Below, in pieces: positions 9,601 to 63,055 of a stretch of 64,000 nucleotides of DNA. The notes below the pieces were generated by a model that worked only from the letters and a program-made list of their open reading frames with translations, had not been told where the DNA came from and did no database searches. The stretch is from Vitrella brassicaformis CCMP3155. Taxonomy: Eukaryota > Protista > Chromerida. Numbering within the stretch: position 1 is the stretch's first letter; every line of letters starts with the position of its first letter. The position numbers were made by a program, and so were the translations under genes. The stretch lies in NCBI GenBank assembly GCA_001179505.1, contig CDMY01000320.1:58750-122749 (forward strand), read 5' to 3'.

Positions 9601-12600
9601 CTCTCGCCTCGTCCTCCACCTCCATTTGCATCCGCTCCCACTGTCCCGTTACGGTGCCGTCGATCGTCTCCATCATCTGCCGAACGTCATGCAGTTTCTG
9701 CTGAGGGTCGAGCCGGTCAAACGTCCTCAGCTCAGAGCTCTTGCGCTTGCGGCGCGCGGACACGCGGGAGCCGATGGGTGTTTGGCGGGCAGCTGTCGCA
9801 GTTGTGGCTGCTGGTGCTGCTGGCACTGAAACCCTGCTGAAGCCAGCTGCCAGTGTTGACTGCCTTCGGCCCGTTTTGTGCTCAGCAATGACAGACAGGT
9901 CCGCAAAAGACTCCATCGGCGTCATCGTGGGCGTCTTGTCTGCCTTGTACTGTTTCTTGGACATGGCTTTGAAATTCTGTTTGGCGTAGCCCATGAGCTG
10001 GGGGTACACGGCTGTGGGCTCCTCCCTGTCGGCAACGTCTGGATGCTTGCGCTTCCTGGCCTGCAGCCGATTGACGTGACGGGTGAGTGACGGGCGGGTG
10101 GGGATGTCCTGTAGATAGGTCCGGTCCTGGTCATATCTTAGCGGATCGTGCTTTCGCATCTCAGCCATCCTGCGAAAAAAGTGCCTTCTCGCTATATGAG
10201 GGCAAGCTTTTTGTGCACATCGGCCGACCTGCAATGTGCTGCTTCAAGGTCACCCATCTCAATGGCCGCGGCGCTCTGCCCCAAGACGGGAGTTGTCGAG
10301 GGAGCGAATAGCCGGATTGTGCGCTGGTTGCTGCCAACAACCAGCGCCATCGGGGCCTGAGGCCGACCCACAACCACCACTCCTGCAGTCATCAACATCA
10401 GAAACGCCACTTGTGTCTGATGCGTACACCTAGTGACCTGTGATCTCGTCGATGGATGTCATAACTCGCAAGGGCAAGCCGTGTGGCGACCACAGAACGA
10501 TTGTACTGGGCGAGGCCGAGAACAGCAAGTTCCGGTGCGGGCTGAGGAACGACAGGCCCACCACCTCCAGTGCATGATACTTCTCATACCACTTGCAGCC
10601 CGCCCTCCTGTCCAGCCGCTGCATGGCGATGTCGCCTGTGCTCAGCCCCAACGCCATGGTCATCCCACTTGCGTCCATGATCCACGCCGTAAATCGAGGC
10701 GGCCCCGTCGCTGGTTTCGCCAGGACGGTGGCGAATCTCGACGACGGGCCTTTGGAAGGCGGGATGAGCGTCACACGCTGCATCAACGTGAGAGACGGCG
10801 ACCGCAGAGGCTCCCAAGGGGGCGGGCGCTCAATCTGCCACATGCAGATGTCGGTGTTGTCGTGAAGGGTGACGATTCTCCCATCATGTGTAGGGACGGG
10901 AGGATGCATGTGGGCCCTCTTGAAGTCACTTGCGATGGGGACGCCTGACACCGTGGTGTCTAGAAGAGATGGCGGGGCAGATGAGGACCAGTCCACCCTC
11001 CCAACTCGCCGAATAGCGCGGCACGGCCCACCCGTCTCCTCCGCGCCGACTGTCAAGATAAGGAATGCGCACCGCTGGTCAGGCGGAGGCGTGGGAATCG
11101 GCTGACTGAATGATGACAGAGTGGCTGGAGGGCTGCTAGCGTCATGGGAGGCCGAGTCCCGCGAGCACAGCAGATAACCGGTGAAGCCTCCGGTAATGTG
11201 CGAGGCGAGGATGAAGGTCAGGTGCCATTCGGTCACGTGGCCAGGCAGCACCGAGGAACCGAAAACGAAAGAGCCCTTGCCGCGTTGTCTCGGATCGGGC
11301 ATTGCCAACATGGGGGCGTCTGGCGCTTCATCGGTGTCATCCCTTGTGCCGTCGATAAAGCTCCACGGGCGGCAGAAGCTCTCTGTAGGCGGGTAGAGTG
11401 GGATGGCACAAATAGCGTTCACAAAATCTGCAGACAAGCACACATAGGGAGGAATGACGGACACCATGTAGGCAGCGGCGGTTTCTGTATTGATTCAGTC
11501 ATACCCTGTTGGCCTGTCAGTCGGTATGTGTGCTGTAGTGTCAGTCGCCTTCTCACGTCCTGTGTCTCCGTGACACCGTACACATCGACGTAACCCTGGT
11601 GGGCATGGGTCACGCAATTCATCTCAATGTCGGCGATTAGTGTCGATTCATCCTCAGGGAAAACCTCGCTGCTCGCTGATGACGACGCAGACGACGCGCT
11701 TCGTGCTGTTGCTGCAAAGTACTGATCAGTGGCATTGCTTTCCGCCGAGGGGACTCGCTTGCGAGGCACCTTGGGCGATCTCGGCGACTCGTATTGCTGG
11801 GAGGATGCCTGTGTCTGAGCGAACAGACGTGGCAAGCCAAGAATGACGACAGAAAGACAGATGAAGAAAATTGACATGTCGCTGCGTACAGTGAGCTCGT
11901 CGATCATCACGAATGGCCCCTTTGACTCCCTCTGGCTGACGGTGGGCCCCGCTTTTGATTTGCCTTTCTTCTTGTCCTCTTTGTCAAAGCTCGCTGGCAA
12001 CGCAGGTTGCTGGAAGCGCCGCAATGCGCCAGCAAATCGCCGCTTGTGGCCGAGGTGCCGGTAGTCCGACGGGATGGGCAGCTGCAGCAGCGATATGAGA
12101 CCCTGGCGGACACCCGCCCCGCTAAGCGTCATCAATGTGACTGGATCGATCTGCGACGCGCGGCGGGGATGCAGAGCACTTCGGTCCAAACATGATTGCC
12201 TACAGTAGCATGCACGAGACACGCGGCCTAATTAGACCTTGAGTTGAGGGGCATGTCTGTCTACTTGTATGCAGGTGTGTCACCAAAGGGGCGAGAGAGC
12301 CGTGTGGTCGGGCAGGATGAGGGAGACATCCCGGAACACACCATGTGCCAGCTTCACAACTGTCTCGGCCATCGTATGGATCTACAGACACACAGAAAGA
12401 GATAGATTGACCCAATGTGCACACAGGGGTACAGCAATCCAGTGGGTACTTGGACACATTGCAGGGCCTTGTCGTGTGCCACGATGAGGTACTGAAGCCC
12501 TGTTTGCGGCGAGCTGTCGGCCACCATCCGAGAGATGAACTTGTGCGACCTGCTGACGAGATCGGCTGGCGGACGGGGCGTCTCTGACTCGGAGTCGGAG

Positions 12601-14575
12601 TACTCCTGACCACCCCAAGCAGACAGCAAGGTCTCGTTACACCAGAGAGAGTGGAGGGAATGGTGTTTCTCACCGGCAGCCGGAATCCATCCACCAGACG
12701 ACTCTGCACCAGGTTGCAACACAGCAGTGTGCCGTCGGCTGCAGCCACGCACAAAAGAACAGACATGTTGTCTTCTGTTGAAAAGAAGAGTCATCGATAC
12801 CGGTCAAGCAGAAGCCATACACGCCATAGAGAGGGTCCTCCACCCGCACGGACGTGATAGTGACATCTTCCTGCGTCTCCCGCCTCTCGTTGAAGAGCTC
12901 TCGCTGCCTCTCGTCCTCCGTCATCAGGTTGACGGCAGTGCTGCTCTCCTTGCGAGTAAGGGCGAGGCCCATCGAGCTCGCCTTACTGCCCGAGCGGCTC
13001 AACAGAGGGATACTCGATTCATCCTGTGGTGATGCAGGTTGTTGCTGTGTTTCTTCCTCCATCTTGGATGCAGTGGTTGTTTCTCTGAATGTCTCCTCTC
13101 TCATGTTGCATCGGACGATGCCCGCCACCTCCTGCATGAAGGACACCTTGGCAATGTTGAGGGCGGGAAACTGGGCGTGCGTTCGCACTGCAGCAATTGC
13201 AGACCGCCTGATATTGCCGTCATCCATTTCTGTTTCGGCTGACCGTCTCTATGGCTCCAGATACGCCATGCTTCGAGCGAGTCGCCGTGAGATGCCACAA
13301 TGTGGAACGCTCTGTCGCAGTAGAGGCTGTGAATAGGGCCAGATGCCTGGAAGCGACTCAACACAGCGCCACTCGGCACGTCCCATATGAAGCCAGCGCC
13401 CAAGTCGTCCACACCTGTGATGTTACAACACGAGGGCAAATGGAACATGTATTTGGCTGTTTTGTCCGATAAAACTGACCAATGATGACTTCGTGCAGGT
13501 CCGAGACGGCAATGTGCTTGACCGGCGGACCGGCGGGATTGAGCTTGATCACATTCAGCAGCCGCGAAGATACGTCTCCATAGGCGACATTCGCTGTCTC
13601 CTCCCTCTCACTCTCGTTCTCGTCCACGGCGGCGTGTCTCAGGCAGTCCACACTGACAGCAGTGTGTTTGCGCTCTAGCCGCCATATGCGGATGTGATGC
13701 TCGCGTGAGAGGCAGCACACTTCGTGGCGCTTCTGGAACACGCACACCTCCCGCACGCTCGGCTGCCACTGAGGATGCATGTGTGAAGACACATGCCAGA
13801 GATGGCAGTCGCGTCTCCTCGTTTTTTGTCTCTTACCAATGGGAATTCGACGACGGTGCGCGGCATTGGTGGCGAGCCGATGGGAGGAAGGCCGACGTTG
13901 TTAGGAGATGCGGTGAGCGTTTCATTTGGGTTGATATCCCAGAGTACGGCGAGCGTGATCGGGTGCAGTATCTTGATGATGTTCTCCATGTTGATCACCA
14001 GCCTGGCCAACGATTGCTCGATGAATGAATACACGACAATGTGACAGGTGTTCTTCTTGCCCATTGCTGACCATCCGTCATTGAGGTTGAGGTAGCTGAT
14101 GGACCAGAATGCCTTGTCCTTTGCCAGGATGGCCTTCGCGCCACGACCACTGAACGAAGAAGAAACGGCCGCCCGATGATGTGTACAGACTGCGCGTTTC
14201 CTTAGATTTCTTACGACATGACGGTCCATCTTCTGAGTCCTTTTTCGTTGTCAGCATAGTTCCGCTTCACCTGGCGGGTCTTGACACACCTGCAGAAAGG
14301 AAGCGTGGTATGAATCTATTACATGTCATTGACACAAATCCGTCAATGAGGTTCATGGCTGACCAGAGGATGAGTTCATACATGTCGGAGGAAAGCAGCA
14401 GCCGATGGCGCTGATGATGGGGAGAACAGCAGACATACTTACTACTGGATCTGCTGTCTGTATATGCTTCTCTTACCGGATTGAATGCCATGGCGACAAT
14501 TTTGTGTTTGTGTGCGCCCAGGGTGCCATCGAACTGGAACCTCGGATGAGGAGTGACGTCCTTCACACCAGACAT
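3616..14575 (-). CDS. Very large multi-exon protein (roughly 3000 aa): N-terminal WD40-like repeats, low-complexity middle, E/R/K-rich coiled-coil C-terminal part
   Basis: ATG at 14575 (MSGVKDVTPHPRFQFDGTLGAHKHKIVAMAFNP). WD-like segments HHIRIWRL, GAGFIWDVPSG, DSLEAWRIWS, NLLFSASPSTIVLWSPHG. Long minus ORFs (10430-11467, 8345-10234, 6141-8324, 5381-5890, 4687-5607, 3872-4789) can be joined by short GT-AG introns; the 8308-8360 intron gives in-frame TSLK|PIRSF. Stop TGA at 3616. Not every junction was verified. Confidence 0.7.
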
Positions 14576-45571: not shown

Positions 45572-47493
45572 ATGAATCCCGTCGAGAGTCTTGAGTCCAA
45601 CAAGTTCTCGGACCTCATCAGCGCCAGTCAGCAGGAGGGGGTGCTGGCCGAGTCGGCAGAGGTACGCACACACACACACACACACACACACAAGCAACAA
45701 ACAGGGCTGGCTTGATCCCCTCTCTCTTTGTGTGTCTGTATGGATCATGGATCAGACGGCAGCGGAGCTCCACTCCTTCCGGCCGACAGCCTCTGCCCAC
45801 GCCATGTCCCACTCACTGGCAGGCGCGTCAGGCGCCCTCATCGCCATGGCCCTCGTGTACCCCCTCGACAACCTGAGAACGCGCTTCCAGGTCTCCCGGC
45901 GGGACACCCACACGGATATCTTGTCGGCCCTGCAGGAGATCCTGAGGCGGGAGGGGTGGTCGGGGATATACGCTGGGCTGCGGAGTGCGCTCATCGGTGT
46001 GGGGGCGTCGTGGGCGGTGTACTACTACTTCTATGCGCTGTTCAAGACCTACTTCGGCCAGAAGTGAGCGTGAGAAAAAGCGTGGAGTGGCCGGCGCGTT
46101 GTGATTGTGTGTGTGTGTGTGTGTGTGTGTGCGTGCGTGCAGGTCACATTTCGGCGGCACGACGGCGTTGACGAATCTTGGTGTGGGTCTGAGTGCAGGG
46201 GTCATATCCGCCATCGCAACCAACCCCAGTGAGCATCCACACACACTGCACTCACTATACCTATACAATCAACGCGCTTCTCTCTCTCTGTGTGTGTGTG
46301 GTGTGTGCGTGTCAGTATGGGTGGTGAACACGCGGCTGAAGCTGCGGCAAACCAACTCGGGCACACAGGTGACACAAGAGCACACAATGCATTCACAGCA
46401 GATCGGGCGACGTGGCACATGTAGATGTGTGTCACCTCCCTCTCTGTGTGTCTGTGTGTCACCTCCCTCTCTGTGTGTCTGTGTGTCCACGACAATGCAG
46501 CAGGACTTCTTCAAGGGCATGTTAGCGCTGGCGCGGGAGGAGGGCCTGCAGGGCCTCCTCTCCGGTGTGGTGCCCTCGCTGATCCTGGTGACCAACCCCG
46601 CCATCCAATTCGCTGTCTATGAGAAACTCAAACAGCTGCTGCTACAGGCACAGGTGGGTACCTGACCTGCCTAGGGGGGTGTCCACGACATCTCTCTGTC
46701 TGTCTGTCTGTCTGTCGCATGTTGGTGTGTGCATCTCTCTGTGTGGTGTGTGTCGATGGTTGGCTGTGTGCAGCAAGGTAGGGATGGGGACAGGCTGGAG
46801 GGTCGGCTGCTCTTCCCGCCGCCCAAGAAGGAGCCCTATGGACAGCAGAGATCGCAGCTCACGGCGCTGGAGTTCTTCCTCATCGGTCACTCAGCCATCG
46901 CCTCGCCGATGTGTCTTGTGTCGGTGGTGCACTGTGGTGTGTGTGTGTGCAGGTGCCGTCGCAAAGCTGATTGCTACGGTGGTGACCTACCCCTACCAGG
47001 TGGTCAAGTCCCGGCTGCAGGCGAAGCAGTCCAAGTCGGCAAGATATGCTGGTAGGTGCACATGGGGAGAGGGAGGGGGAGAGGAGAATACCCACAAGCA
47101 CTTGTGTGTGTGCCGGCGATGGGATGGATGTGTGATAGGTGTGGTGGACTGCATAGTGCGGATACTGGACGAGGAGGGCGTGGGGGGCATGTTCAGAGGC
47201 CTCCAGTCCAAACTCGTCGCTACCATACTCACCTCCGCCATCATGTTCATGTGAGTGAGCCCCACACACAGAGATACAGACAGGGAGGGAGGGAGGGAGA
47301 AATGGCGCCAATCTCTCTTGTGTCTTGCAGGTCCTACGAGAAGCTGCTGATCATGGCCTTGGGTGTGCAGAAGAAGCTGTACAAGCAGAAGGCGATGAAG
47401 AAGGCGGCCGCCCTCAGCCCGTCAGCAGCCGTTCCCCCGGCGTCACACAACCCGCACCCACGGCCAGGATCCAATAAGCCACAGACGCGATGA
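45572..47493 (+). CDS. Mitochondrial-carrier-family (SLC25) protein, peroxisomal PMP34/PXN-like
   Basis: Three carrier repeats: YPLDNLRTRFQ, NP|IWVVNTRLK, YPYQVVKSRLQ; GVGASWAVYYYFY and LVTNPAIQFAVYEKLK are typical of the PMP34/PXN branch. About 9 exons. Confidence 0.85.
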
Positions 47494-48389
47494 ATGATTG
47501 ATTGATTCGTTGCCTGCCTGCGTGGTTGGTTGGTTCTACAGACGCATCCTGTCTTTCTGGGATGCATGGATGGATGGGACGGTTTTGGTTTATATCCCCT
47601 CTCTCTTTCTCTCTCTCTCCCTCTCTCTCCTTCTGTAAAACTCCCGCCGTATTTGTGTATACAAAAACCAATGGGAACAGACTCTATGAATGTTTGTGGC
47701 TGTCTGTGTCGGTTCTTTTGTTGGATTTTTGGGTGGGTTGGCTGGTGGGACAAACATGATGGATAGATAGATGTGTACGCGTGTATAGTAGAGACAGACA
47801 GACAGGCTGGTTGGAAAGACGGACAGCCAGCCATTCCATTGGGCCGTCGCTCTACTCTACCCCCCTAAACCCCCCCTCCCACCTCTCTCTCCCTCCGTGT
47901 CTCTCTGTATACATCTCTCGCTCTCCTTCTCGGACCGTCAGCTGCCGTGCCTTGTCTGTCTCATGTCAGTGGACAGGGGACAATGAATGTGACACAATGC
48001 GCGACGCATTTACCTCTACGCACACACACCTTGCGAATGATTTCACGAGATCGACAAGTGCCGTCGAGTCCGGACATTACTGGGCTGTTTTGAGTTCGAG
48101 CAGGCCACGTGTGACGGTCTCGTCTGACGTCAGAGAGACCGTCACTGATGACATGCCCATGTTGTAAACAGCTCAGTGCTGCCCCGTGTGAGAAGGTCTC
48201 ATCTCACCCACTTCGAGTGAGAGCAGTCTCGCGCATAGATGCTCATGCCCCTGCCACCTCTCAGTCAGCTCACCTTGCACACGCAGTCTGTCTGCGCACC
48301 GCAACCCCCAAGCAATTAACACACACCACAAGGACACATCTATCCATGCAGACATGCCTACCCCCGCCACCACGCCCCGCCCCGCCCCC

Positions 48390-51300
48390 TTATTCATCTG
48401 GACCATTCTCATCGGCCACATTGCCGTCGTCATACTCATGGGTATGCTCCGAATGCTCATGCTCATGCTCATGCTCATGCTCATGGTCATTGTCATGGTC
48501 AGGCATATCATCCACTCTCAAGGCCACCCCACCACCGTCCTCCCCTTCCTCGTCTTCATGCCCCCGCCGCTCGTCCACACGCACCTCGTCCAGGTGGCTC
48601 TCAGACGGCCGGCGATACCCACTGCTGGACGAGCTGCTGCCGTTGTGTCCCTCGTCACCTGCACACCCCAGCGGCGCAGATATGGGCGCTATGGGAGAGG
48701 GGGACACCATATCTGACGATGAGGCGACGAGAGGGCTGCGAGGAGGGGGGGCCAGCAGAGACGACGGGCCGAATGGGGGGCTGAAGGTGAGCAGACGCTG
48801 ATGCTGCTGGTGCTGGTCCGACGACCGGTGCAGGCGCCTGCCACGACCATGCCCATGACGCAGATGCCCCCTTGCCGGCTCGCTTGCCCCAGCATCGTCT
48901 TCGCCCTCACCAATATCACCGTCATCATGATCATGGTGCGTCGACGGCACGGAGGAGAGGATGTTCAGGCTGATGGACCGGCCAGCCGCGTCTCCCTCCT
49001 CCGCTATGGTCGTTGGCACTCTAGCTGGCGACGTGTCGAGGTTGATGGCGACCTCCCCGCCGGCCGCCAGGTCTGACGACATGCCTCGGTGGATCGTGGA
49101 GGACCGAGCTGCTGATGCTGATGCTGACGCAGATGAGGCCGGGAGAGGGGCCACATCGTTATCATCGAAAGGGCTGCCCATCCACGACGAGCGGCCTTCT
49201 TCGGGTGAGGGGGCTTCCTCGCCGCCAGTGGCACCATGCTGTCCCCCTCTCCCTCCCCCGGCCCCACCCTCCGCCCCTCCCTGCTGCGTCAGCAGCTCGT
49301 CACTCGATGCAGCGGGAAACTGCATCCTCAGCGCCAGCGATGCCGCACTCATCTCGGCAAGCCGCTGACCCAGCTCCAGCCGGTCGAACGCTCCTTCGCG
49401 CGCCGACGCTGGCGAGAGCGGCTTTTGAGTCCGCATGTGCCTCTCGATGGCAGGTGCAGGTGCGGATGGGGTGCCACGGCCATCTCGGTAGAAGGAGGGG
49501 ATCGGCAGCACGTCACCCATCTCGCCTCGGTCGGAGTCGTCACCCTCCCCCTCGTCGCTGCGCAATCTGTTTGCGCGACTGGCCGCTGTGGCCCTCATCG
49601 ACCCAGATGAGCTCTCGTGCGTGGCCGTCAGGGAGATGTTGGGCCGCCTGCCTGCCGGGGGCGATGCTGGGAGAGAGTTGAGGGCGATTGCGGGGGCGTT
49701 CGACCTCGGCATGGCGCCACGCCTCACGCTCGGCGGCTGCTGGGCTGGGCCGGGACCATTGAGCGGTGAGTGCGCATATGCCGGGGCGAGGAGCGGCAGC
49801 CGACGGCTAATGGCCCCCAGGCCGCCGCGGTTGCCGAGCGACCCACGGGTGGATGGCGGCCTCTGTGGCAGGCCAGAGCCGCCTCCAGGCTCCATGCCGC
49901 CGAATATCGGTGGGGCGGGAGTCTGGCCTGCTGCTGCTGCAGCCGCTGCTGCCGCTGCTGCTGCCGCTGCGGGCATGGGTCGACTAACGCCGGGCTGCGG
50001 GAGGCCCGTGCCGTCAGTGCTGCCGACTGACGCGTCTGCGGCGCCCCTGTGGTTGGTGTTTGACGACGGCTGTGAGGGAGGCATGCGTGGGTTGGAGGGG
50101 CCAGGGGGGGCGTGGGGAGAGGGAGGGGGAGGCGGGTCACTGCACGAGAGAAACACAGACAGACACAAGATGCGCAGACATGATGGGGCTGTGGGGTGTG
50201 GGGTGTGGGTCACTCACCGTGGGGATTGGTCTGGGTCGAGGGTCTCGGCGAGCCACGAGTCGGGCGGCTGTTCCACCGTCTCCAACACGACCTTCTGGCC
50301 AACTGACACAATGCCCACCAACAGGTGGTACCTGACACACACCGGCACCATTGGTATGCACACAAGATTGCCCCATTGCGATCGGATCGGCGTCCCCCAT
50401 CTATACCGTGCTTTGGGCAGGTTGTAGACGCACACGAAGGGCCGGTGGGTCTGCTTCATCCACAAGCGCATGTTGTCGTGGTCGAGACACACGTACAGCG
50501 TGTCGTCGCTCTGCAGCCGGTCCAAACCCACCACAGACTTGGGCACTCCCGCGTTGAACACCTTGCCCGTCTCACTGCATCGCGCAGACACACGGATGGG
50601 ATGGGATGGGATGGGGATACAAGTGCAGATACCCGCCGCGCCTGTGTGTGCGGTGCAGTGCGATGGGTGGGGTGTGGACTGACCTGTAGTAGACGAACGC
50701 GTGTTCGCTCTTGTATGCGTCGGTGATGCCCGCCTCCTCACTCGCCACCCCCACTATCAGCCGATTGGACAATGGGAAGCCGTAGGAAGGAAACCTGCAG
50801 CAGACAGCATCACACACAGAGTGAGCAACAGCTGGTGCTGCATGTCGTGTGCTGTTGTGTCCGCACCTGATCTCATAGAACTTCTTGCCCGTCCTCTGTG
50901 TGTTCCACACAGACAAGGTGGCGTACTCACAGTCCATATCTGACCCCCCCACAACAGAGAACCCCTCCCTCCACTTTGGTGTGGTGTGCACGAGTTGAGG
51001 TGCACACGGACGGGCGCACAATGCCCACCCACCCGTGATGGATGTGCGCTTGACGGAGATGCCCGAGGTCTTGATGCCGACCTCCAGGTCGGGGTGGCAC
51101 ATGTGCTGCGGGCAGATGTTGTTGAGGATCCGCCGGTGGGAGCAGAACATCTCACCAAAGATGCTCTTGAGCACACTCAGCGGCATCGAGTCGAGAAAAC
51201 CGCTCAGGAAGTATTCCGTCACAAAGTCTGGACACACAGATGGGATGGGGGACGGTGAAAGTGTCAATGAATGGAAGCTTGGCAGGAAATCGGTGACCGA

Positions 51301-52825
51301 CCCTGCACGTGTCTGTGGATGATGGTCCTGATGCCGTCAGTCGCTATGTCGTACAGGTCCACTGCAGCAGAAATACAGGCAGGCAGGCAGGCAGGCACCA
51401 ACACAACACACCGTCGCGACGCGGCACACATGCACTCGTCCACTCGCCCACCGCCCACCGAGTGTCTGTCTGTGTGCGAGATGTGCGCTGCGCTTACAGA
51501 AGAAGAGGAAGGTGTCTTTGGAGATGAAGCTGTCCGTCACGCGGGTCAGGTGATCCAGCAGCGACTTCATCTGGTAGTACGTGGCCAGCTTGAGCAACTC
51601 GCCAAAATTGGAGCCCTCTATCACCGTCTCGGCGCCATAGAAGTACCTGCACACACACAGACGCACGCGAGGCATATCATGTGGGGACGGGACGCTCTGT
51701 GTGTGTGAGTGCCCTGAGTGAAGTGGCCAGCCACCCGATGAATCGATGGAAGACGTCGCTGTCAAACTCCCGGATGCACACCTCTTTGTTGCCCTGATTC
51801 GACTCCCGATAGCCGCCAAAGAACATGGCCTACACACACGAGAGTCCGTCACTTGCTAACGGCTGCATGCAGAGTGGGGGGGGGGGGGGGNNNNNNNNNN
51901 NNNNNNNNNNNNNNNNNNNNNNNNNNNNNNNNNNNNNNNNNNNNNNNNNNNNNNNNNNNNNNNNNNNNNNNNNNNNNNNNNNNNNNNNNNNNNNNNNNNN
52001 NNNNNNNNNNNNNNNNNNNNNNNNNNNNNNNNNNNNNNNNNNNNNNNNNNNNNNNNNNNNNNNNNNNNNNNNNNNNNNNNNNNNNNNNNNNNNNNNNNNN
52101 NNNNNNNNNNNNNNNNNNNNNNNNNNNNNNNNNNNNNNNNNNNNNNNNNNNNNNNNNNNNNNNNNNNNNNNNNNNNNNNNNNNNNNNNNNGGGAGGTCTT
52201 GCTCACCTTGAAAACAGGTGACCCACTCGCCAACACACACCGATGCGCCTGACGATCGCACAGCCACACAGAACGGGAAACCAGTCAAATCAGCACAATT
52301 GAATCAGCATCGACGCAAAGCATTGCGGGGAGAGGGAAGCGGACATGCATCCTTTTCTCGCCGACACAGCCATCGGTGCGGTTCGGTGCGTACCCATATT
52401 CGCCGAGAGTTGGTGACCAAGACGACGTCGGCGGTGTCCTCATCTTCCCAAAGGCCCTGGATGCACCCCTCACGCACCACAACGATGGAACGGTCTACCA
52501 TGGCGGTGAAGAGCTCGCGAGAAAACAATGATGATGGCAACGAACGCCTCCGCCAGGCTGCCGGCCCACCTTCTCTGGCGAGCTTTGCTTCAGGCTCGCA
52601 GGACGGCGAACCCGAATCCATTTCCGCGTCTTGGAGAATTCGCTTCCGAATCGGTGGTGGTTTGGGAGGTAGATGCATTGCCAGGCACTTCAGCAGCGGC
52701 GGTGGGATCTGCTCATGGCTTGAGCTGCTGCGGACCGACACAGCAATGCTCCTCAACCGCTCAGATGCAAAGGAGGAAGGTGCGTCTGATGGAAGACTGA
52801 GAATTCTCGCTGGATCAACCATCAC
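48390..52825 (-). CDS. BTB/POZ plus SPRY-like domain protein with a long disordered tail ending in a His-Glu repeat
   Basis: DTADVVLVT..ASGSPVFK, YFYGAETVIEGSNFGELLKLATYYQMKSLLDHL (BTB). KKFYEIR..LIVGVASE..AFVYY..GKVF..DTLYVCLDHDNMRLW (SPRY-like). In-frame junction SPR|DPPP into ORF 48390-50213. The start is uncertain and the gene spans a gap. Confidence 0.7.
51891..52190. other. Assembly gap (300 N)
   Basis: Run of N preceded by 15 G. Confidence 0.99.
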
Positions 52826-53038
52826 CGATAATCACTGTGTGTGTGTGTGACTTTCCAGATCCAGGGGCGGCGCGCGACGCTGCTGAAGTAGCCAAGGCAG
52901 CTGCGCCGTCGGCCGATGCCGGCAGTGCAAACACAGATGGGCCCGCTCAGTAACAAGACGACACGCTGATCTCGCTGCAGATCTCTGCTCATCGCCTGGC
53001 TGGTTAATCTGTTGTCGTCGGGTCGTTGGGCGTATAGG

Positions 53039-55110
53039 ATGGACATAGAGGATCTGTCGGCGGCGTTGGAGTTCTCGTCGCGGCTGCCTGAGGGCGCACC
53101 GTACAAACGATGGAAGACGCCCAGAGGCCTGTCCGTGACCGGTAGACGCCGGCAAGAACGGGCGACGGACGGCTCAGTGCAGATGCCTGTGCGTTGTGTG
53201 TGTCGCCTGTGGGTGTGGTCAGACATGTCGAGTCAGCTTTGGTGCGAGAAACAGGCAGAGTTCGTGCTGGAAACAGGTATACGGGCGGCTAAGGATCCAG
53301 TGGGTGTGTATGTGTATGTGTATGTGCGTGTGTCACACAGGCATCAAGCGCCGCACGGCGGCCATGATTGCGGGCACTGCCCGGCACGACGAGCTGGAGC
53401 GACTCGACCACGACATAGAGGAAATAGAAGTACGTCCACGCACGCAGACCCCGCGAGCACCCTCCCACACGTGGTTGATCTCTGTGTGTGTGTGGATGTG
53501 TCAGGTTGAGACCGCCGAGGACCAGCTGGGCGTTCGGCTGTGGAACGCCCTCATGCTCATCACCCAAGTGTGTCGCAAGGGGGAGGCGCGGGAGATCCCC
53601 GTCTTCGGCGTCATACAGGGGGCCTTGTTCAGAGGCATCATCGACGAGGTGCGCTGCGAGCACCACACACCACACACCACTGCATCCACGACACACACAC
53701 TTGCGCGTGTGCCGTCCGTCTATCCAGGTTCGCATAGTTGAGGAGAGCTTCAAAGGCCGCTGCGGGCGGTGGACGGTGATAGGCGACACCAAGACAAGGC
53801 GGCAGGAGACCATGCCCTCCATGTCGCAGCAACAGGGGTCGGCCTTCCAGCTGCAGCTGTCAGTATATCCCCTCCCCTCCCCTCCACACACACACACACA
53901 CACAGATGACCGCCTCCACCAAGGAAGCTCTTTGTGTGCAGGTACTACCGTCTGTTGAAGGACCTGCGTGACGGCGTGACGCCGATCGAGCCCATGCTAC
54001 AGTCATGGGGCGTGGCCTTCGAGGGACGCTTCAAGTCCGACGCGCTGACTTCATCCTTTGAGTCCATCGACGAGCTCTGGCCCGCTGTGCTCGAAGCGGC
54101 CGCTGGCCTGCCCGAAATCCGGCCAGGTACACAGGCACCAAGTGGGGGCCAACGGTGTCTGTCGCTTCATGTGTGTCTGTTTCCCTCACAAATCAGAGAT
54201 GGAGGTGGCGTATGACTTCAACGGCAAGGAGTTCCACCGATCGAGGATCCCTTACGCCGAGCGGGCAGTCATGTTCCAGCTGCGGGAGCTGCTGCAGTGG
54301 TGGAAGGGCGACAGACACGCCGAAGGTTGGTGGGCCTTGTACCTGGATCGATGCACGATCTCTCTCTCTGTCTACCTCTCTTCATGAGATGTCTCTGTTA
54401 TGCATGCAGGTGTGCAGCCGCGTGAGGCGTGGAAGTGCCGCTACTGCGACTTCTTGCTCGGCTGCCCCCTCACACCACTCACCGCCGAGCAGATCAGCGA
54501 AGAAATCGCCAAGCGCACACAAGAACTCGAGCAGCCACAGCAGCAAGAGCAAGAGCAGCAGGAGGGCGCAGCTGCTGTCGACAACAACAACAACATCAAC
54601 ACCGACAAAGGGCCGGAGAGCGCGCCGCAGCTAGGCGGCCCCAACGACTCCCCATCCGACAAACCACAGGCCGACAAACGGCCGGATGCGCCTCACCCCT
54701 CCCCCTCCCCAGCAGCAGGCGCTGCAGCCGCCACGCCATCCACTGGAGATGGCTCGTCAGCCAGTGGCCCCCAACCACCACGACCACCCCAAGCAGCAGC
54801 AGCAGTAGGTGGAGTGAGGCGCGTCAATCAAGTCCGAGGCCCACACCCCCTGCCGCCGCCGCGAGGGGCGGGCGGTGTGCCGAGGGGTGTGCCGAGGGGT
54901 GTGCCGGGGAGGGGCATGGTGCCTCGGAGGCCACCGCCCCCTCCGAACCTGCAAGCGCCGGCAGCTGTTGGAGCGCCTCCAGAGGCAAACGATGGCAGGG
55001 GTCGTGGCGTGATGCAGAGGGGGAGGGGAAGGGCGGGTTATGGGAATGGGAGGGGGTTTGTCAACAGACCTGTGAGGCCACCGTTTGCCGCCGCTGGCGG
55101 CACAAGATGA
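53039..55110 (+). CDS. EXO5: Exonuclease V (EXO5/DEM1 family, 4Fe-4S RecB-like nuclease) with a low-complexity C-terminal extension
   Basis: GLSVT|DMSSQLWCEKQ, GTARHDELE, REIPVFG..FRGIIDEVR, IGDTKTR, QL|YYRLL, WWKGDR..EAWKCRYCDFLLGC (one N-terminal plus three C-terminal Cys). Confidence 0.9.
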
Positions 55111-55724
55111 CTCAACTCTATGAATGGACGGATGCGTGGATGGATGGGCGTGTTGGGTGCTAGCTTTGATGTGTGTACACAGAGACAGACGGACAGACAG
55201 ACAGACAGGCAAGCACCAGATGCCGTGCGGACCTGTATGTGGCTGCAGGTGCCGCAACAGGGTGGGTGTACAGCTAGGCAGCTATATGGATATGGCTGTT
55301 GCATCACGTGTTCCTTCTGACAGGGAGGCAGTACTGAAAAGGGTGTGCAAATCGGCCTGCCGAGCTTCCTGGCCAAACCCTTCACCCTTACCCTTACCCT
55401 AGAGGTCGACTGAAACACCGATATGAGGCAAGAACGGAGGAAACAGAGGCCGGACCTTCTCCGTTGACGACAGCAAGAAGGCAAAGGGCAACACTCCGAG
55501 ATCTGCAGTGCCGATGACCCGAGAGTCGGCACGACCTCGAGGCGAGAACTTGCCAGACCCGCCGGGAACTTCTGATTTTTTGCAGGGATCTTGTTTGGAC
55601 CAGTGCAAACCTGACAAAACCTGACTCCCGTGCCCGAACGACCGCCAGAAAGAGAGATCCGGGAAGAGCCCCTTGAAACGCTGCCCATCAGCGATCGACA
55701 TCCATAGCTTTCCTCCACATTTCT

Positions 55725-55812
55725 GTTCTGTCCAGTGCTAAGCACTGCCCCGGAGAGGTCACAAGTGTCCTTCCCAGTGTCAAGCACTGCCCCGTAGAGG
55801 TTACACGTACTA
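55725..55812. repeat. Two 42-bp tandem units, each carrying the palindrome CAGTG-N5-CACTG, upstream of the cyclin gene
   Basis: CAGTGctaagCACTG at 55733-55747 and CAGTGtcaagCACTG at 55775-55789, both followed by ccccg.agaggt.aca. Confidence 0.8.
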
Positions 55813-55892
55813 GTCCTTTCCCGTGCAGCTCCGTATAGCTCCGTGCGCATAGAGCGGAGGCCCTCTGTGGCGTCACGTCCGCCACCATCGTG

Positions 55893-56434
55893 ATGGCCTC
55901 TGGGATGTTAGGCAAACGCGTAAGCAGCCATGCGGGAGGGATCCATAACGTGCCACACCCATCCATCCCATCCAATTGCATCCATCCATTCCCCCGTGTG
56001 TGTCAGGACCTGCTCTACATGCCACCAGAGCTGCTTCCGAAGGCCAAGAAGACCTGTCGGAAGGGCCGCCTGAGCGAGAAGGATGGCCAGCAGGACGGCG
56101 AGCGGGATGAGCAAGCCATCATGGTGATGGAGCCAAAGGCCGTGGACGTGCAGATCAAGGTACGCATGCAAAACAGGGGGTCGGAGCTCATGAGGGCTGT
56201 GAACACACCTGTGTGCGCGTGTGTCTTCTGTCTGTCTGTGTGCAGGAGTTGGTATTGCCGGGTCACTATGTCGCCAACTGCTCTGCGGACTGGAAGCAGG
56301 GGGCGCGGGGCATGATGGTCGACAGACTGTTCGAGGCCGCCGAGGAGCTCAACCTGCACTACAGAGTGCTCTACCTCGCGGCCAACCTCACGGACCAGTT
56401 CTCATACCTAGGTATGTGAGCCCGCATAGCACCA

Positions 56435-56465
<31 letters not shown>

Positions 56466-59209
56466 CAGAGCGGCGGACGGACACTCTGTGTGTGGGTGCT
56501 TCGTGCATCTGTGTCAGTTTCCAAGTACTGCCCCGGCATGAAGCGCATCAACCTCTCAGCCGTACACACAAACACACCCACACCCACACCCACTCATCTA
56601 CACAACACACCCACACGTCTGTGTTCATCGTCATGTGTGTCAGGTGGGCTACACGTGCATCTGGATCGCGCAGCAGCAGGTCAAGGGCGGCGCGTCCTGG
56701 GAGTTCGGCCAGAAGATCGTGGAACTCATGAACGACATGCCCAAGAACAAGTCGTATGACCTCCAGGCGCTCGTAGACATCGAGAAGAAAGTCAAAAGGT
56801 ACACCTACACGTCCACACCCCTCCCACCCACAGAAAGAGGGGAATCCCCTGTCTGTCATTGTATGTGTGTCGGTATGCGTCTGATTGGTGTGGTGTGGTG
56901 TGGTGTGTGCAGCGTTGTTGGATCTGGTTGTGAGTGCGAGACCGCCGCCGACCTCGTGGTGCGGTACGCCATGGCCGCCCAGCTGCCGAGCGGCACCGAG
57001 CCACACGTGTTCGCGAAGTTCCTGACGGTGAGCCACCCACACCCATACACGGATGCACGCCCATTCACACATCCGTGTGTGGCTGTGGTGTGGTGTGGTG
57101 TGCAGGAGTTGGCGTTGACTGAGTTCGATCTGTCGAAATACGGCCCCAAGATGCTCACTGTAGGCAGACAGACACAAAGGAATTAACTGCCCAGCCCAGT
57201 CCGTGCGTCACGTCTGGTGTGGTGTGTGTTGGTCTGTTCCTTCCAGGCCGCCTGTGTGTGGGGGGCGCGCAGCCTCTGCCTCGACCTGCCTGAGGAGGAG
57301 GACTATGTACGTGTGCAGCCAACACGACACGCACACACACACGCACACACACACGCACACAAACAAACAAACAAACAGTCACATGTGTCATCATGTGTTG
57401 TCTGTGCTACCTGTCATTCACCCACAGCCGCCCGAGTTGGAGCGCATCAGCGGCCTGACGTACACCGACATCATGCCCTGTGTCCAGGATCTGTGGAGAG
57501 CTCTCAAGCAGCTCAATCGGAGCGAAAACCGCGCCATGGTGAGTGGACAGTCACACACACACGTGACACACACACACCTGTGGGGAAAGGAGGGCCACGC
57601 AATTACTCTCACCTGTGCCATCTTTGTGTGTGATGGTTGGTATACATGGAATCTGCAGGCGAGTTTTCAGGAGCGTTGGCGGACAGATGAGCGCTACAGC
57701 CTCAGTGACAGACTCTACGGCGAGATCAAGAAACCCACCCCGCCCAGGACGCCCTCTGACGTACACACCCACACACCCACACACCCACATACGCACATTG
57801 ACACATTGGCGGCGATGTGGGTGTGCTGTGCGTCAGGGTCTGTGTCTGCCGGCCGACTATCCTGAGTCATGTTCGGACGAGTTCAAGACAGAGATCCGCG
57901 GCCACGTGGTGGACCGCATGATGGCCGTCTCGGACAAGTTTGGCATCCAGACGAGGACGCTCAACTTGGCGGTGACGCTCAAGGACAGCTACCTATACAC
58001 AGGTACACACACACACACACACACAACCGACACACAGAGAGAGCGGCATTCATTGTGTTGGTGTCCTTGGTTGCATTCTGCGGGCGCAGCAAACAATGAG
58101 TTCGCCAACTCGGGCATCCCCCGTTTCAGTTTGCTGGCCGTACGCACTCGCGCACACAAACACAAACACACCCACACCTCCCTCTCCCTCATGTGTGTTG
58201 TGTGGGTGTGGTCCGTGTGTGTGCAGGTCGGGTTCACATGTCTGTATATGGCCTCCAGCCACCAGGTCCCTCTCAGCGACCTCACAGCCGCCCTCAACAA
58301 GGAGCCAGCGTCTGCCTTCCGCCCCCGCATCTACACTGAGCAGGACATCATCGCCATCGAGAAGGCCATCATCGAGTAATAGACGAGGCGAACCGATCAT
58401 AGGCACCCACCATCACGTGTGTGTCCGTTTGATATGCATATGTGTGTGCAGCGTGGTGGCGAGCAAGCTGACGTCGGTGTGGCTGGCGGCCGATCGCACT
58501 GCTGCCGACTTCGCTGAGCGTTTCTGCACGGCTGGGGGGATCTCCGGCGGCTCGAAGCACCGTGCATTCGTCGACTTCCTGCTGGTGAGTCGGACACAGG
58601 AGACACAACAGCACGCATTGACCAGCTTGTGTGTGGCCTGTGTTGTGTGCAGGAGTTGGCGATGACGGACTTCGACATGGCGAAATACACACCCAAGACC
58701 CTCGCCGTAGGGACACCCGCACACAGGAATACATCCATCCATCCCTGCATCCATGGATCTCCCCTACACCCCTGCAGGCAGCCGCCGTCTGGGAGACTCG
58801 TCAGATGTGGATGGTCCGCCCCGGGCAATCCCACGCTGGCGAGGAACCATTCGTAAGCCACACACACACAACACAGACACCCACAGAGAGAAATGATCCT
58901 CATCGTGAACCACGTGTGTGTGTGTGTGTGTCAATCATGTGTGGTGTAATGTAGAGCGAGGGACTGGGAGAGGCGAGCGGCCTAAGCGAGGAGGACGTGG
59001 CGCCATGCGCAAAAGACCTCGCGAGACTGCTGATGGCCATCGGCCAGCGGAACAGCATTCCGGTGCGTATATCAGCCAGAGAGGCAGACGGCACCATGTA
59101 CTCGGGATGTCCCCCTGTATCTATGCAGGCCACCATGCTGTCGTGCTTGCGCCGGTGGTCAACGACAGAACGGTTCAAGTGGGGTCTCTTCTCTTTCCTT
59201 TCTCCCTGA
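55893..59209 (+). CDS. Double cyclin: two complete cyclin N+C modules in one reading frame
   Basis: Module 1: ARGMMVDRLFEAAEELNLHYRVLYLAANLTDQF..DIEKKVK..FAKFLT|ELALTEFDLSKYGPKMLT|AACVW..LERISGLTYTDIMPCVQDL. Module 2: IRGHVVDRMMAVSDKFGIQTRTLNLAVTLKDSY..AIEKAII..FVDFLL|ELAMTDFDMAKYTPKTLA|AAAVW..LGEASGLSEEDVAPCAKDL. They are joined in frame by a phase-0 intron at ~57761-57837. Confidence 0.8.
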
Positions 59210-60011: not shown

Positions 60012-60310
60012 CAGTCTGTTGTTTGACGAGTTTGAGGACGAGTGGGCTGGCCGACGTGGGCGAGGAGGAGACACCCATCAGCCACCCTCTGTGCAGCAGC
60101 AGCACTCTTAGCATCGCCACTCGGGACGGAGCGGGCTCTACGGCCGATGATAGCAAATCGCAGCAAGGTAAGTGACGGACTGACTGGTGAGTCAGTCAGT
60201 GTGATTGGTTGATGGTCATGAGTGAAACTGTCGTATGTCTGTTGGCTCTGCGCTGCGTTCCGTTGCTCTCTCTATGTGCAGGTCTGTCAGTGGCCGAGCC
60301 GTGTGGCGAA
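60012..60310 (+). pseudogene. Fragment of the kinase-family N-terminal module (exon end, intron, start of next exon)
   Basis: LADVGEEETPISHPLCSSSTLSIATRDGAGSTADDSKSQQ|gtaagt..tgcag|GLSVAEPCGEG, then homology stops. Confidence 0.8.
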
Positions 60311-60674
60311 GGATTCGTTATCCGAGAAAAGCTCGCGTTTCTCGACGAAAGGAGACGGGAGACGGTCCTCTGTGATTATTTCTTCACATCTATAAGGACG
60401 CCTCTCATTTGGCATTCGTTCAATCCTCCTGCGCATCGCTTTCAGCTCGCAGCAAACGGCTGACCGTTGAGGAGTGAGAGAGAGCAAACAGCAGCGACAT
60501 ACTGTCAGCGTCCTTCGCCTATGTCTACAGCACAGCAGCAGCAGCAGCGCGACAGCAAGAGCCCGTCGGCACGGATCAGGTTCAGCCGTCCCCTGGCCAG
60601 CCGTGCCATTTCACGACAGCGACGCCAACAGCACACCAAGACCATGACCCACCCCGTCGGCATGGATCACCGGC

Positions 60675-63055
60675 AGACCTCCCCTGCCCAGCCGTGCCAC
60701 AAACAAGACCAAGACCACCGCCAGTGCCACCACACACACCAACGGCGGCCACGACGACTGGGCTTCGTCTGCTGACCACCGCGGCAGAGTGCCGTGCGGG
60801 AGAGGGCCGTAGAGACCGTGGCTGAGGAGCCGGATGAGGTGTGCGCCGACGTGGGCGAGGAGGAGCCGAGCATCCTCCCCCTGCCGCACCTCAGCAACAC
60901 GGCCGCCGCCCGCCTCCCCGACCACCGCGGCGCAAGCGAGGCCGGCAGCAGCCGAGAGGCCGCGGGAGCACCAAGCCCGCCAGTAAAGAGGGAGGGAGAG
61001 GGTGAGGGTGAGTGGGAGGAGGGCGATGAGTGGCTGGCCGATGTGGGCGAGGAGGAGACACCCATCAGCCACCCTCTTTGCAGCAGCAGCACGTTTAGCA
61101 TCGCCACTCGGGACGGAGCGGGCTCTACGGCCAATAAGAGCAAATCGCAGCAAGGTAAGTGACGGACTGACTGGTCAGTCAGTCAGTGTGATTGGTTGAT
61201 GGTCATGAGTGAAACTGTCGTATGTCTGTTGGTTGGCTCTGCGTTGCCTTGCGTTGCTCTCTCTCTGTGCAGGTCTGTCAGTGGCCGAGCCGTGTGACGA
61301 GGGACCCCCTCCCGCCCCTATCCTCGCACCTGCACCACCCGCCATCCTGCGCCTGAAGAGCGGTGCCGAAGTAGAGCTCCGAGTCAAGCTCGGCGAGGGC
61401 ACACGCGGCAAGGTGATGGCCGGCGTGGTCAACGAATGATGGATGGCCTTCAAGATGGCAATTAGGGGGGCGGGCAGCCGGACCATCTGCGAGGAGATGG
61501 AGACCGAGAGGGCCACGATGGAGAGGCTGCAGCAGCGGAGGAGGGAGAGGGGCGAGATGGGCCTGTTTCTCGACACCTACGTCTACGCGGGTCCCTCGGA
61601 CGGCGCCACGTTCCGCGCCAGCCCCTCTGACCCGCCGCAGGAGTGCCTCTACCTGGCCCAGCAGCTCGTCAACGACCCGCCCAGCGGCGACACGTTTGTG
61701 TGCCTGAACGACCTGCTGTGGGAGGAGGGCGGCGGGCTCAACCTGGCGGGCATCTCAGCAGCTCATCCACCCACACGGCCGGTCTTCGACAAGGCCATGG
61801 GGATGATTGGCAAGTTGCTGATGCTGGTTAGGGCGCTGCGTGAGGCGGTCAGGGGGCACCGGAGGGCCCTGGAGGACTACGACTCGATGCTGCCCGACCA
61901 CTGCATGAACAACCCTGTGTCCGCAGGAGCGCCATCGCACGGGGTAAGTAAATCGATAGGTCACACACACACAGACAGACAGACCGTCAATCGCACACAC
62001 CACAGATACGCACACGATGATTCCGCTTTGGTAACCTACCTGCATTGCTTTTGTGTGTCCCTATGATATGGCTTGTCTGGCTCAGGTGATAGCGACGTGT
62101 CTGAGGCCGCCGGCGTGGTCTTCATTGACCACGGCAACACCCTCCACACGCGCACCCCCGGCCCGCTGCTCCGCCGCAAGGACGGCACCACTCCCCCCCG
62201 GCCATACCCCGGGAAAGCCGCCCTCGTGCCCACAGACTCGTCGACCAGGGAAGTGGAGCGGCAGCTGGCCGGTTTCACCAACTTCGGCGGCGCCCCAGAG
62301 CAGCTGCTGTACTGGCATCGGCGGCGGCAGCTGCTCAACGATTGGTCGCAGAGAGTGGGCCCGTTCTACTTTGAGGAGCGAGAGATTCGCGGGGCAGACG
62401 GCCAGCTGTGCCGACAGAATGTCCATTCCATGGCCAATTCCGCCGTTGACGAGCTGCGGGCCGACAGGGTGGTGCCTGCTGCCCCTAAGGCTGCTCAGGG
62501 TGTGTGGATGGGCGAGCCGACGGTGGCCTTCCAGTTCGGCATTCTCATCCGCAACATCCTCCGGGCCGAGCGGTGGCAACGGATGCTGGAGCGGCTGGAG
62601 TCGTGGGCCGACAAGTCCCACATAGAGCCGCCGGATGGCGCCACTGAGGTCGACAAGGAGATCCCCTCGGCCCCGGTTTCGACGGGGACATGCAGCAAGG
62701 CCTGCTTGCCCTCAGCTGGCGCCACACGTTCTCCCTCATTTCCGAGCCCAATGGCCACCCCAAGATGGAGGAGGGCAGACGGCACCTGCATGAGCGGACA
62801 CAGGAAGAGGGCCCGGGGTGGCTGGAGGGCGTCATACAGCGGCTCGAGGCCATCTGTCCAAGCGCCCTGCAGTTCCTCCCCTCGGAGCGATGCACTCTCG
62901 CCCACATCGATGCCAAGCTCTCGGAGGTCCTCGACCTTCTCGAGTCGGTAGAGATGCCGGTGGCTGAGGAGCCGGGTGAGGTGTGCGCCGACGTGGCCGA
63001 GGGGGAGCTTTGTGGCCTGCCTCTCTTCTCTTGCTGCTGGTCAGTATCTATCTAG
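60675..63055 (+). pseudogene. Divergent Ser/Thr protein kinase-like gene, copy 2, disrupted
   Basis: Collinear with ~685-3078. TGA at 61437-61439 (CGA in copy 1), 1-nt deletion at ~61914-61916, 4-nt deletion at ~62662, TGA at 60773-60775. Retains GEGTRG, AFK, catalytic LPDHCMNN (GAC 61896-61898), DHG and APE. Homology continues into the 3' flank to ~63310. Confidence 0.85.

Follow-up and report, generated by a model that had tools for sequence, protein, structure and literature searches.

Cyclins belong to the best-studied regulators in biology and, to our knowledge, as a rule carry a single module and pair with a single kinase. The Cyclin_N domain is the first cyclin fold, and the Cyclin_C domain, the second, is the mark of the A/B/D/E group. 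Analysis of a 64,000-nucleotide (nt) stretch of the Vitrella brassicaformis CCMP3155 genome (hereafter the window, which is the final 64 kb of contig CDMY01000320.1) identified a gene encoding two complete A/B-type cyclin modules in one protein of 600 amino acids (aa). The apicomplexan parasites, to which the free-living Vitrella is related, have unusual cell cycles, and their cyclins and cyclin-dependent kinase (CDK)-related kinases are highly divergent and poorly matched to each other. The Vitrella protein resembled cyclin A2 and cyclin B1 in the combination of Cyclin_N and Cyclin_C in each module, in having these two cyclins as its top matches in the PDB, and in the Glu of helix 5; a possible destruction box (D-box) lies in front of module 1. 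It differed from them in having two modules, in the replacement of the Trp, Met, Ile, and Leu of MRAILVDW and of the Lys of ASK[YF]EE, and in keeping under half of the columns conserved among A/B cyclins.

Four cyclin folds in a single polypeptide are also found in the retinoblastoma (Rb) family (pRb, p107, p130, and Rbf1), in which they are thought to derive from successive tandem duplications and serve as a docking platform rather than as a kinase activator (PMC2475671). The Rb folds are, however, far diverged and unrecognised as Cyclin_N or Cyclin_C, whereas the Vitrella protein consists of two A/B-type cyclins and carries no Rb signature. Covalent joining of cell-cycle modules is known from the CDK-cyclin fusion proteins of Stentor and Phytophthora (bioRxiv 10.1101/168187), one case being in an alveolate; these fusions combine a kinase domain with one cyclin module, whereas the Vitrella protein has two cyclin modules and no kinase domain. 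The Plasmodium protein SOC2 is without key cyclin-box residues yet is found in a functional complex with the divergent CDK-related kinase CRK5 (PMC7308089). As a divergent cyclin-like protein of a related lineage (Myzozoa), SOC2 offers a model for a possible function of the double cyclin, although it has one cyclin-like region and the analogy is functional only, with no sequence relationship claimed.

Two cyclin modules in one gene and one mRNA

The gene model was built by manual joining of exons from the three forward-frame translations and consisted of 18 exons on the plus strand (55893-59209; Table 1), with 17 of 17 introns of the GT-AG type and each 66-121 nt long. The region is eukaryotic, with approximately 58% G+C and short CA/GT-rich introns. 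The coding sequence of 1803 nt specified 600 aa and, by exact look-up, the protein matched letter for letter the V. brassicaformis CCMP3155 entry CEM02208.1/A0A0G4EU83 (UniRef100_A0A0G4EU83).

Pfam analysis of the full protein identified two stretches of Cyclin_N (E 2.1e-17; 63.4 bits in total vs. a cut-off of 23) and two of Cyclin_C (E 2.3e-27; 95.8 bits in total vs. a cut-off of 22). Both domains exceeded their gathering cut-offs when each module was searched alone, with values of 1.3e-07 (31.8 bits) for Cyclin_N and 8.8e-13 (48.8 bits) for Cyclin_C in module 1 and of 1.6e-08 (34.7 bits) and 2.1e-13 (50.8 bits), respectively, in module 2. The two halves (aa 61-329 and 330-600) aligned end to end with 33% identity (E 2e-41). 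The same gene structure was repeated in each half, as exons 3-10 measured 166/44/155/115/54/60/111/102 nt and exons 11-18 measured 166/50/149/133/54/75/108/81 nt, with identical start phases of 0,1,0,2,0,0,0,0.

The modules are separated by only 76 nt (intron 10), and module 2 is without a start codon of its own before its cyclin box (DRMMAV). Transcript evidence came from both this gene and a second, sister locus of the same genome (L001, described below). A 2145-nt intron-free contig of the Joint Genome Institute (JGI) transcript assembly (L002), comprising 18 coding blocks and a spliced 3' untranslated region (UTR) block, matched the sister locus at essentially 100% (95-100% per block). This complementary DNA (cDNA) ran across the exon 10/11 junction, with the intron equivalent to intron 10 removed. 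MMETSP Transcript_6993 contained a complete 600-aa open reading frame (ORF) that shares 596 of 600 residues with the window protein and has window-type diagnostic residues both before the junction (309 and 321) and after it (333 and 339); its four differences from the window protein formed a short run of sister-locus residues. The locus is one real gene that gives one mRNA and one 600-aa protein. Retention of intron 10 would extend the frame by 34 codons, up to a stop near 57863, and give a one-module protein.

These results bear on several claims of an earlier note on this DNA, made from the sequence alone. Its reading of two whole cyclin modules in one frame agrees with the Pfam count, and the intron landmarks that it described recur in both halves, namely a phase-2 intron after IEKKVK or IEKAII and a 54-nt exon encoding ELALTEFD or ELAMTDFD. 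It had also allowed for transcripts that end between the modules, and both the sister cDNA and Transcript_6993 were found to cross the junction. The start of exon 11, given there as 57838, lies at 57837 in the splice model.

Only two sequences span both halves, and the 118 single cyclins are all placed on module 2 by MAFFT; AlphaFold2 was therefore run twice, with these 118 aligned on module 2 and then with 42 cyclins preferring module 1. A profile search dominated by ordinary B-type cyclins was used only for alignment rows in this structure prediction. The predicted local distance difference test (pLDDT) score was 85-97 for module 2 with the module 2 alignment, a run in which module 1 was left unmodelled, and mostly 85-94 for module 1 with the module 1 alignment. 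Foldseek returned cyclin A2 and cyclin B1 as top matches of the module 2 model (target-normalised template modelling (TM) score about 0.8; root mean square deviation 2.7 A) and again of the second model, in which module 1 is confident (TM about 0.54, with the aligned half unspecified), and phmmer against the PDB aligned aa 75-308 to cyclin A2. The model of module 2 is similar to solved A/B cyclin structures, and for module 1 this similarity is only indicated. The pLDDT was 26-38 for aa 1-62 in both runs and below 50 between the modules (aa 326-342 in the module 1 run and aa 290-328 in the module 2 run). The models suggest two rigid cyclin modules joined by a flexible tether, with a disordered tail in front.

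The tail (aa 1-60), predicted to be disordered, carries a basic stretch (KAKKTCRKGR) and the D-box-like RDLLYMPPE (aa 9-17), a single loose match that departs from the usual RxxLxxxxN-type consensus and is identical in both loci. The linker, of roughly 15-25 residues and predicted to be flexible, begins with GEIKKPTPPRTPSD. Two of the four Ser/Thr-Pro sites in the whole protein fall within it, namely T322-P-P-R, which matches the full CDK consensus, and T326-P; the sister locus has both. The linker TPPR/TP sites and the D-box-like tail motif are candidate control points and nothing more.

Residues for kinase activation and substrate docking

In cyclin A2, Lys266 and Glu295 form hydrogen bonds with the backbone of the loop that precedes the PSTAIRE helix of the kinase, and this Lys-Glu pair is conserved in the complexes of cyclins B, E, T, and D, viral cyclin, and Pho80 (PMC3590450). 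Mouse cyclin A2 with this Lys mutated (K256A; human K266A) continued to bind CDK2, with activation at only 2.1% (PMC3145769). The cyclin A2 Trp is part of the MRAIL patch that docks RxL partners, among them p21, p27, and p107, with a secondary effect on kinase binding, and the mouse W207A mutant (human W217A) lost its RxL partners (PMC3145769).

Motif columns of the Vitrella protein were read from an alignment with 47 ordinary A/B-type cyclins and against cyclin A2 (Table 1). All 47 have Trp, Lys, and Glu at the three columns. Both Vitrella halves have Arg for Trp and a substituted Lys and keep the helix-5 Glu, as had been read from the sequence previously, and the Lys-Glu pair is incomplete in both modules. 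The MRAIL hydrophobic patch for RxL docking (M210, I213, L214, and W217 in cyclin A2) is not preserved in either module. Over the 46 columns conserved in at least 85% of the ordinary A/B cyclins, module 1 retains 20 and module 2 retains 22, against a comparison mean of 42.9. Since a K266A-type change costs cyclin A2 nearly all of its CDK2 activation, the absence of the Lys from both Vitrella modules is a serious departure. K144 of module 1, a Lys lying one helical turn after the canonical position, may be a substitute for the missing residue; in the AlphaFold2 model of module 2, helix 3 ends at A410.

The earlier note had called these positions degenerate CDK-binding residues, a description that stands for the Lys but not for the Trp, which belongs mainly to the RxL docking patch rather than to the CDK contact (PMC3145769). 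The MRAIL Trp was lost across the whole Vitrella subfamily to which the gene belongs, including single-module paralogs that retain the ASK[YF] Lys; the column is occupied by Arg in CEM03013.1 and Transcript_18741, Gly in CEM35301.1, and Glu in CEM14618.1. The Lys itself was kept in three of the four single-module paralogs and lost only in the two-module proteins and CEM14618.1 (P0050). RxL docking has apparently been given up by the whole Vitrella subfamily, and only the Lys loss speaks to CDK activation.

Table 1. Features of the double cyclin gene and neighbouring genes, in window coordinates.
Feature	Position	Strand	Basis or detail
Upstream block common to the sister locus: promoter region and 5' UTR	55362-55892	+	blastn, pairwise alignment
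Exons 1-2, N-terminal tail (aa 1-60)	55893-55919, 56007-56159	+	splice model
Module 1 (aa 61-329), exons 3-10	56246-56411, 56518-56561, 56644-56798, 56913-57027, 57106-57159, 57247-57306, 57428-57538, 57659-57760	+	splice model, Pfam
R87 codon, cyclin A2 W217 position; MRAILVDW reads ARGMMVDR	56324-56326	+	alignment
Q141 codon, cyclin A2 K266 position; ASKFEE reads AQQQVK	56674-56676	+	alignment
K144 codon, Lys one helical turn after the canonical position, module 1	56683-56685	+	alignment, model
E177 codon, cyclin A2 E295 position, kept	56782-56784	+	alignment
Linker, first part (aa 316-329), 3' end of exon 10	57719-57760	+	motif scan, paralog C-termini
Intron 10, inter-module junction	57761-57836	+	76 nt, GT-AG, phase 0
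Module 2 (aa 330-600 and stop), exons 11-18	57837-58002, 58090-58139, 58227-58375, 58452-58584, 58653-58706, 58778-58852, 58955-59062, 59129-59209	+	splice model, Pfam
R356 codon, cyclin A2 W217 position; reads IRGHVVDR	57915-57917	+	alignment
S412 codon, cyclin A2 K266 position; reads ASSHQV	58257-58259	+	alignment
E446 codon, cyclin A2 E295 position, kept	58359-58361	+	alignment
Mitochondrial-carrier gene	to about 47493	+	public gene call
994-aa protein, no domain match	48390-52621	-	public gene call
Exo5-family nuclease gene, upstream neighbour	52746-55110	+	public gene call
Two unannotated genes downstream of the cyclin gene	60147-61439 and 61497-62951	+	public gene calls

A Vitrella-restricted subfamily and its second two-module locus

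Relatives were sought among 1.84 billion representative proteins in an exhaustive HMMER search, with a database entry 99% identical to the protein (P0001) as the query. All matches better than E 1e-20 were from Vitrella, and the rest (apart from P0050) were ordinary A/B cyclins at E 1e-9 or worse. Matches above this level included the single-module cyclins Transcript_18741 (MMETSP; 357 aa), CEM03013.1 (361 aa), and CEM35301.1 (314 aa) and a 206-aa fragment gene adjoining the sister locus, and it was the tree that joined the cyclin-like CEM14618.1 (P0050; 266 aa, E 4e-07) to them. Outside Vitrella, this search found no two-module relative, a word-indexed protein search with the full-length query matched only the protein itself and its sister copy, and a scan of metagenome DNA gave zero close relatives.

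Neighbour-joining analysis (100 bootstraps) grouped the two halves with each other (90%), as sister to the single-module paralogs (99%), inside a Vitrella-only clade (100%); every member of this divergent clade comes from V. brassicaformis. In the exon maps of CEM03013.1 and CEM35301.1, the 8-exon unit (166/44-53/152-155/115/54/75/108-117/75 nt) came after two short N-terminal exons and had phases as in the double gene. The double gene belongs to this Vitrella-restricted subfamily by its place in the clade, by the 8-exon unit with phases 0,1,0,2,0,0,0,0, and by loss of the MRAIL Trp. The single-module paralogs share the clade and the Trp loss, and the unit with its phases in the two that were mapped, but differ in having one module, in the Lys of three of the four, and in ending at ..LYD where the double protein enters its linker.

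Internal duplication had previously been read from the introns shared by the two halves. Their recurrence holds, but the 8-exon structure is present once in the single-module paralogs, so the introns alone reflect family ancestry. Duplication within the gene is nevertheless the best reading, as the halves are mutually nearest in the tree and the repeated unit starts and ends in phase 0, such that its duplication preserves the frame. Gene structure and tree indicate that the protein arose through in-frame duplication of the 8-exon unit. The route may have been a tandem duplication of this unit, or a duplication of the whole gene in which the first stop came to be read through and the transcript spliced into the second unit. 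The single-module paralogs P0008, P0009, and P0011 have their stop directly after ..LYD, where module 1 continues as ..LYGEIKKPTPPRTPSD and then splices into module 2, and the linker looks like sequence past the old C-terminus, derived from read-through of the former stop.

The second locus, CEM20917.1 on CDMY01000531.1 (L001; gene at 10001-13271), encodes a 600-aa protein 89% identical to that of the window. The ratio of nonsynonymous to synonymous substitution rates (dN/dS) between the loci was 0.22 (95% bootstrap 0.16-0.30), with 0 of 200 resamples reaching 1, and values for module 1 (0.21; 0.12-0.40) and module 2 (0.25; 0.17-0.37) were obtained separately. The N-terminal tail was most constrained, with one of 60 residues differing between the loci (dN 0.007, dS 0.28). 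Both modules of both copies are under purifying selection. The halves are at 33% identity and yet neither locus has lost the frame, the junction, or any splice site; the tandem arrangement is therefore an old one that has been maintained.

Homology between the window and L001 was confined to window positions 55358-59187 (blastn of L001 vs. the window), and the transcript start was placed near 55708, as the 5' end of the sister cDNA maps by homology to window 55708-55733. At a later stage, the whole two-module gene and about 370 bp of promoter were copied to the second contig. A retrocopy origin of the sister locus was rejected since all introns and the promoter are retained, and the copying thus took place at the DNA level.

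Further observations concern the extent and divergence of the copied block. It starts at a telomere-like repeat, present as (CCCTTA)3 in the window (55362-55400) and as four units in the sister (L001 about 9450-9500). Conservation between the loci is higher in the approximately 370 bp that precede the inferred transcript start than in several exons, and the window 5' UTR contains a local duplication of about 40 nt (CAGTG.TAAGCACTGCCCCG.AGAGGT, twice) that is absent from the sister locus. Synonymous divergence between the loci was very uneven, with dS of 0.04 over aa 61-190 and up to 0.64 over aa 466-600; exons 3 and 5 were 99% identical and the last exon 62%. This pattern suggests gene conversion of the 5' half between the loci. 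The MMETSP peptides of both loci were mosaics of the two copies with zero private changes, which points to either chimeric assembly or conversion tracts. At the 3' end, the UTRs of the two loci were unrelated, the homology stopping 22 nt before the stop codon of the window gene, and the sister 3' UTR contains an intron (L001 13284-13397; the gap between cDNA blocks 1909-2001 and 1995-2145). Truncated exon copies, mostly exon 3-like and exon 17/18-like, were identified downstream of the sister gene (L001 14109-15456, 16915-17013, and 19308-19458), one of them annotated as the 206-aa chimeric protein CEM20915.1; such exon debris was not seen downstream of the window copy. Many introns within 55920-59128 contain up to 40% (CA)n/(GT)n runs, giving them an 'HTHTHT' or 'CVCVCV' look when translated. 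Among the neighbouring genes (window 45893-55110 and 60147-62951), none was cyclin-related and none was common to the sister locus.

Two unrelated proteins among the 150 best representative matches also have two cyclin modules. P0135 (L007 2442-4253; ENA ERZ27245262 contig k141_207464) is an uninterrupted 603-aa ORF in the order Cyclin_N-Cyclin_C-Cyclin_N-Cyclin_C with animal-type cyclin A as its nearest relatives, and in its two modules the Trp is replaced by Tyr and Ser and the ASK Lys by Arg and Gln. P0082 is a 1001-aa model from Mallomonas annulata (EukProt) with two nearly identical modules and intact motifs, and could reflect either a tandem duplication of recent date or a fused or artefactual model. 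The modules of P0135 and of P0082 each pair within their own protein, far from the Vitrella clade, and the duplications are thus independent. The parallel with P0135 is only a lead, as one case, toward a possible recurrent route of module duplication followed by release from the canonical kinase contact.

In the literature, no paper describing the Vitrella protein or a tandem A/B-type cyclin was found, and the term 'two cyclin boxes' is used there for the two folds of one module; papers found on Vitrella and cyclins only included its sequences when building trees for different classes of cyclins or kinases. The earlier suggestion that no A/B-like cyclin of this architecture is known to have been described agrees with the papers found; sequence databases do contain the predicted two-module P0135 and P0082, and the Vitrella entry is deposited there. 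The Vitrella protein is already public as an unnamed, automatically annotated entry, and its architecture is not unique in sequence space.

Proposed function and alternative explanations

A functioning binding protein is indicated by the A/B-type fold, which is intact, by the Glu that was kept, and by the purifying selection that acts on both modules. We give an even chance to the double cyclin being a non-canonical regulatory partner of divergent CDK-related kinases, bivalent through its tandem layout. Each module would present an intact fold in which the Glu of the pair is kept, the Lys is gone, and the MRAIL patch is dismantled. The protein would thus be without the residue that normally clamps the loop before the kinase PSTAIRE helix and without the patch that docks RxL substrates and inhibitors. 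It would bind one or more divergent CDK-related kinases in a non-canonical manner, as SOC2 binds CRK5, and the tandem layout would allow it to hold two kinases, or one kinase and another partner.

Several points weigh against this reading. Loss of the Lys from both modules would also be expected of a protein that has ceased to activate kinases. The neighbour-joining grouping of the halves could be inflated because module 1 has a long branch, and the transcript of the window copy is an ORF with a four-residue sister-locus mosaic, the clean cDNA being that of the sister. Isoforms that keep intron 10 and stop after module 1 may occur. The predicted TM (pTM) score was 0.49-0.55 and the mutual orientation of the modules was not predicted, as only two sequences span both halves. 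Finally, the D-box-like motif is off consensus, and motifs as short as the CDK sites could occur by chance.

The main rival, which we regard as somewhat unlikely, is that the double cyclin acts independently of CDKs as a scaffold or pseudo-cyclin, either as a four-cyclin-fold platform or as a decoy that holds kinases or regulators without activating them. Both modules are missing the Lys of a pair present in 47 of 47 ordinary A/B cyclins, a K266A-type mutation almost abolishes activation by cyclin A2, the MRAIL patch is lost, and the Lys loss is specific to the double proteins and P0050. The Rb family provides a precedent, its four cyclin folds having arisen by successive tandem duplications and functioning without kinase activation (PMC2475671), and the independent metagenomic two-module P0135 is also without the Trp and Lys in both modules. 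However, both Vitrella modules keep the pair's Glu and an A/B-type fold overall, module 1 has K144 one turn along helix 3, related organisms have divergent cyclin-like proteins that continue to partner divergent kinases, and any non-kinase partner is hypothetical.

More tentatively, and with an unlikely outcome in our estimation, the protein could be regarded as a single-chain 'cyclin dimer'. This would be either a bivalent adaptor, for two CDK-related kinases or for a kinase and a substrate or regulator, or an Rb-like pseudo-cyclin, and in either case phosphorylation of the linker TPPR/TP sites would switch it between states.

It is improbable that the full-length mRNA exists but gives mainly one-module products through intron 10 retention, internal initiation, or processing, such that the tandem layout is functionally minor. 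Retention of intron 10 does end the frame soon after module 1, and the prediction for the linker is of a flexible, exposed segment. Two independent transcript assemblies nevertheless gave complete 600-aa ORFs; both loci preserve the arrangement, the junction frame, and every splice site despite the 33% identity of the halves; and module 2 is under purifying selection though it is without its own start codon.

An artefact, in which two adjacent cyclin genes were misjoined or a duplicate is decaying, is very improbable and largely refuted: gene predictors often fuse tandem duplicates and the truncated cyclin fragments after the sister locus indicate that the family leaves debris, but two fused gene models and a pseudogene were rejected on a cDNA that spans the junction, the 76 nt between the modules with no start codon for module 2, the dN/dS of 0.22 (0 of 200 bootstraps at 1), and the intact frame with 17 canonical introns at two loci, and genomic contamination of the cDNA contigs is excluded by their absence of introns.

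The double cyclin is an evolutionarily instructive case, and the reach of the finding is limited, as the subfamily is so far confined to one species. An expressed and selected double cyclin without the Lys is a natural experiment on what the cyclin fold does after giving up the canonical kinase contact. A lineage-specific burst of odd cyclins beside the apicomplexans may also help to explain how such cell-cycle systems are rewired.

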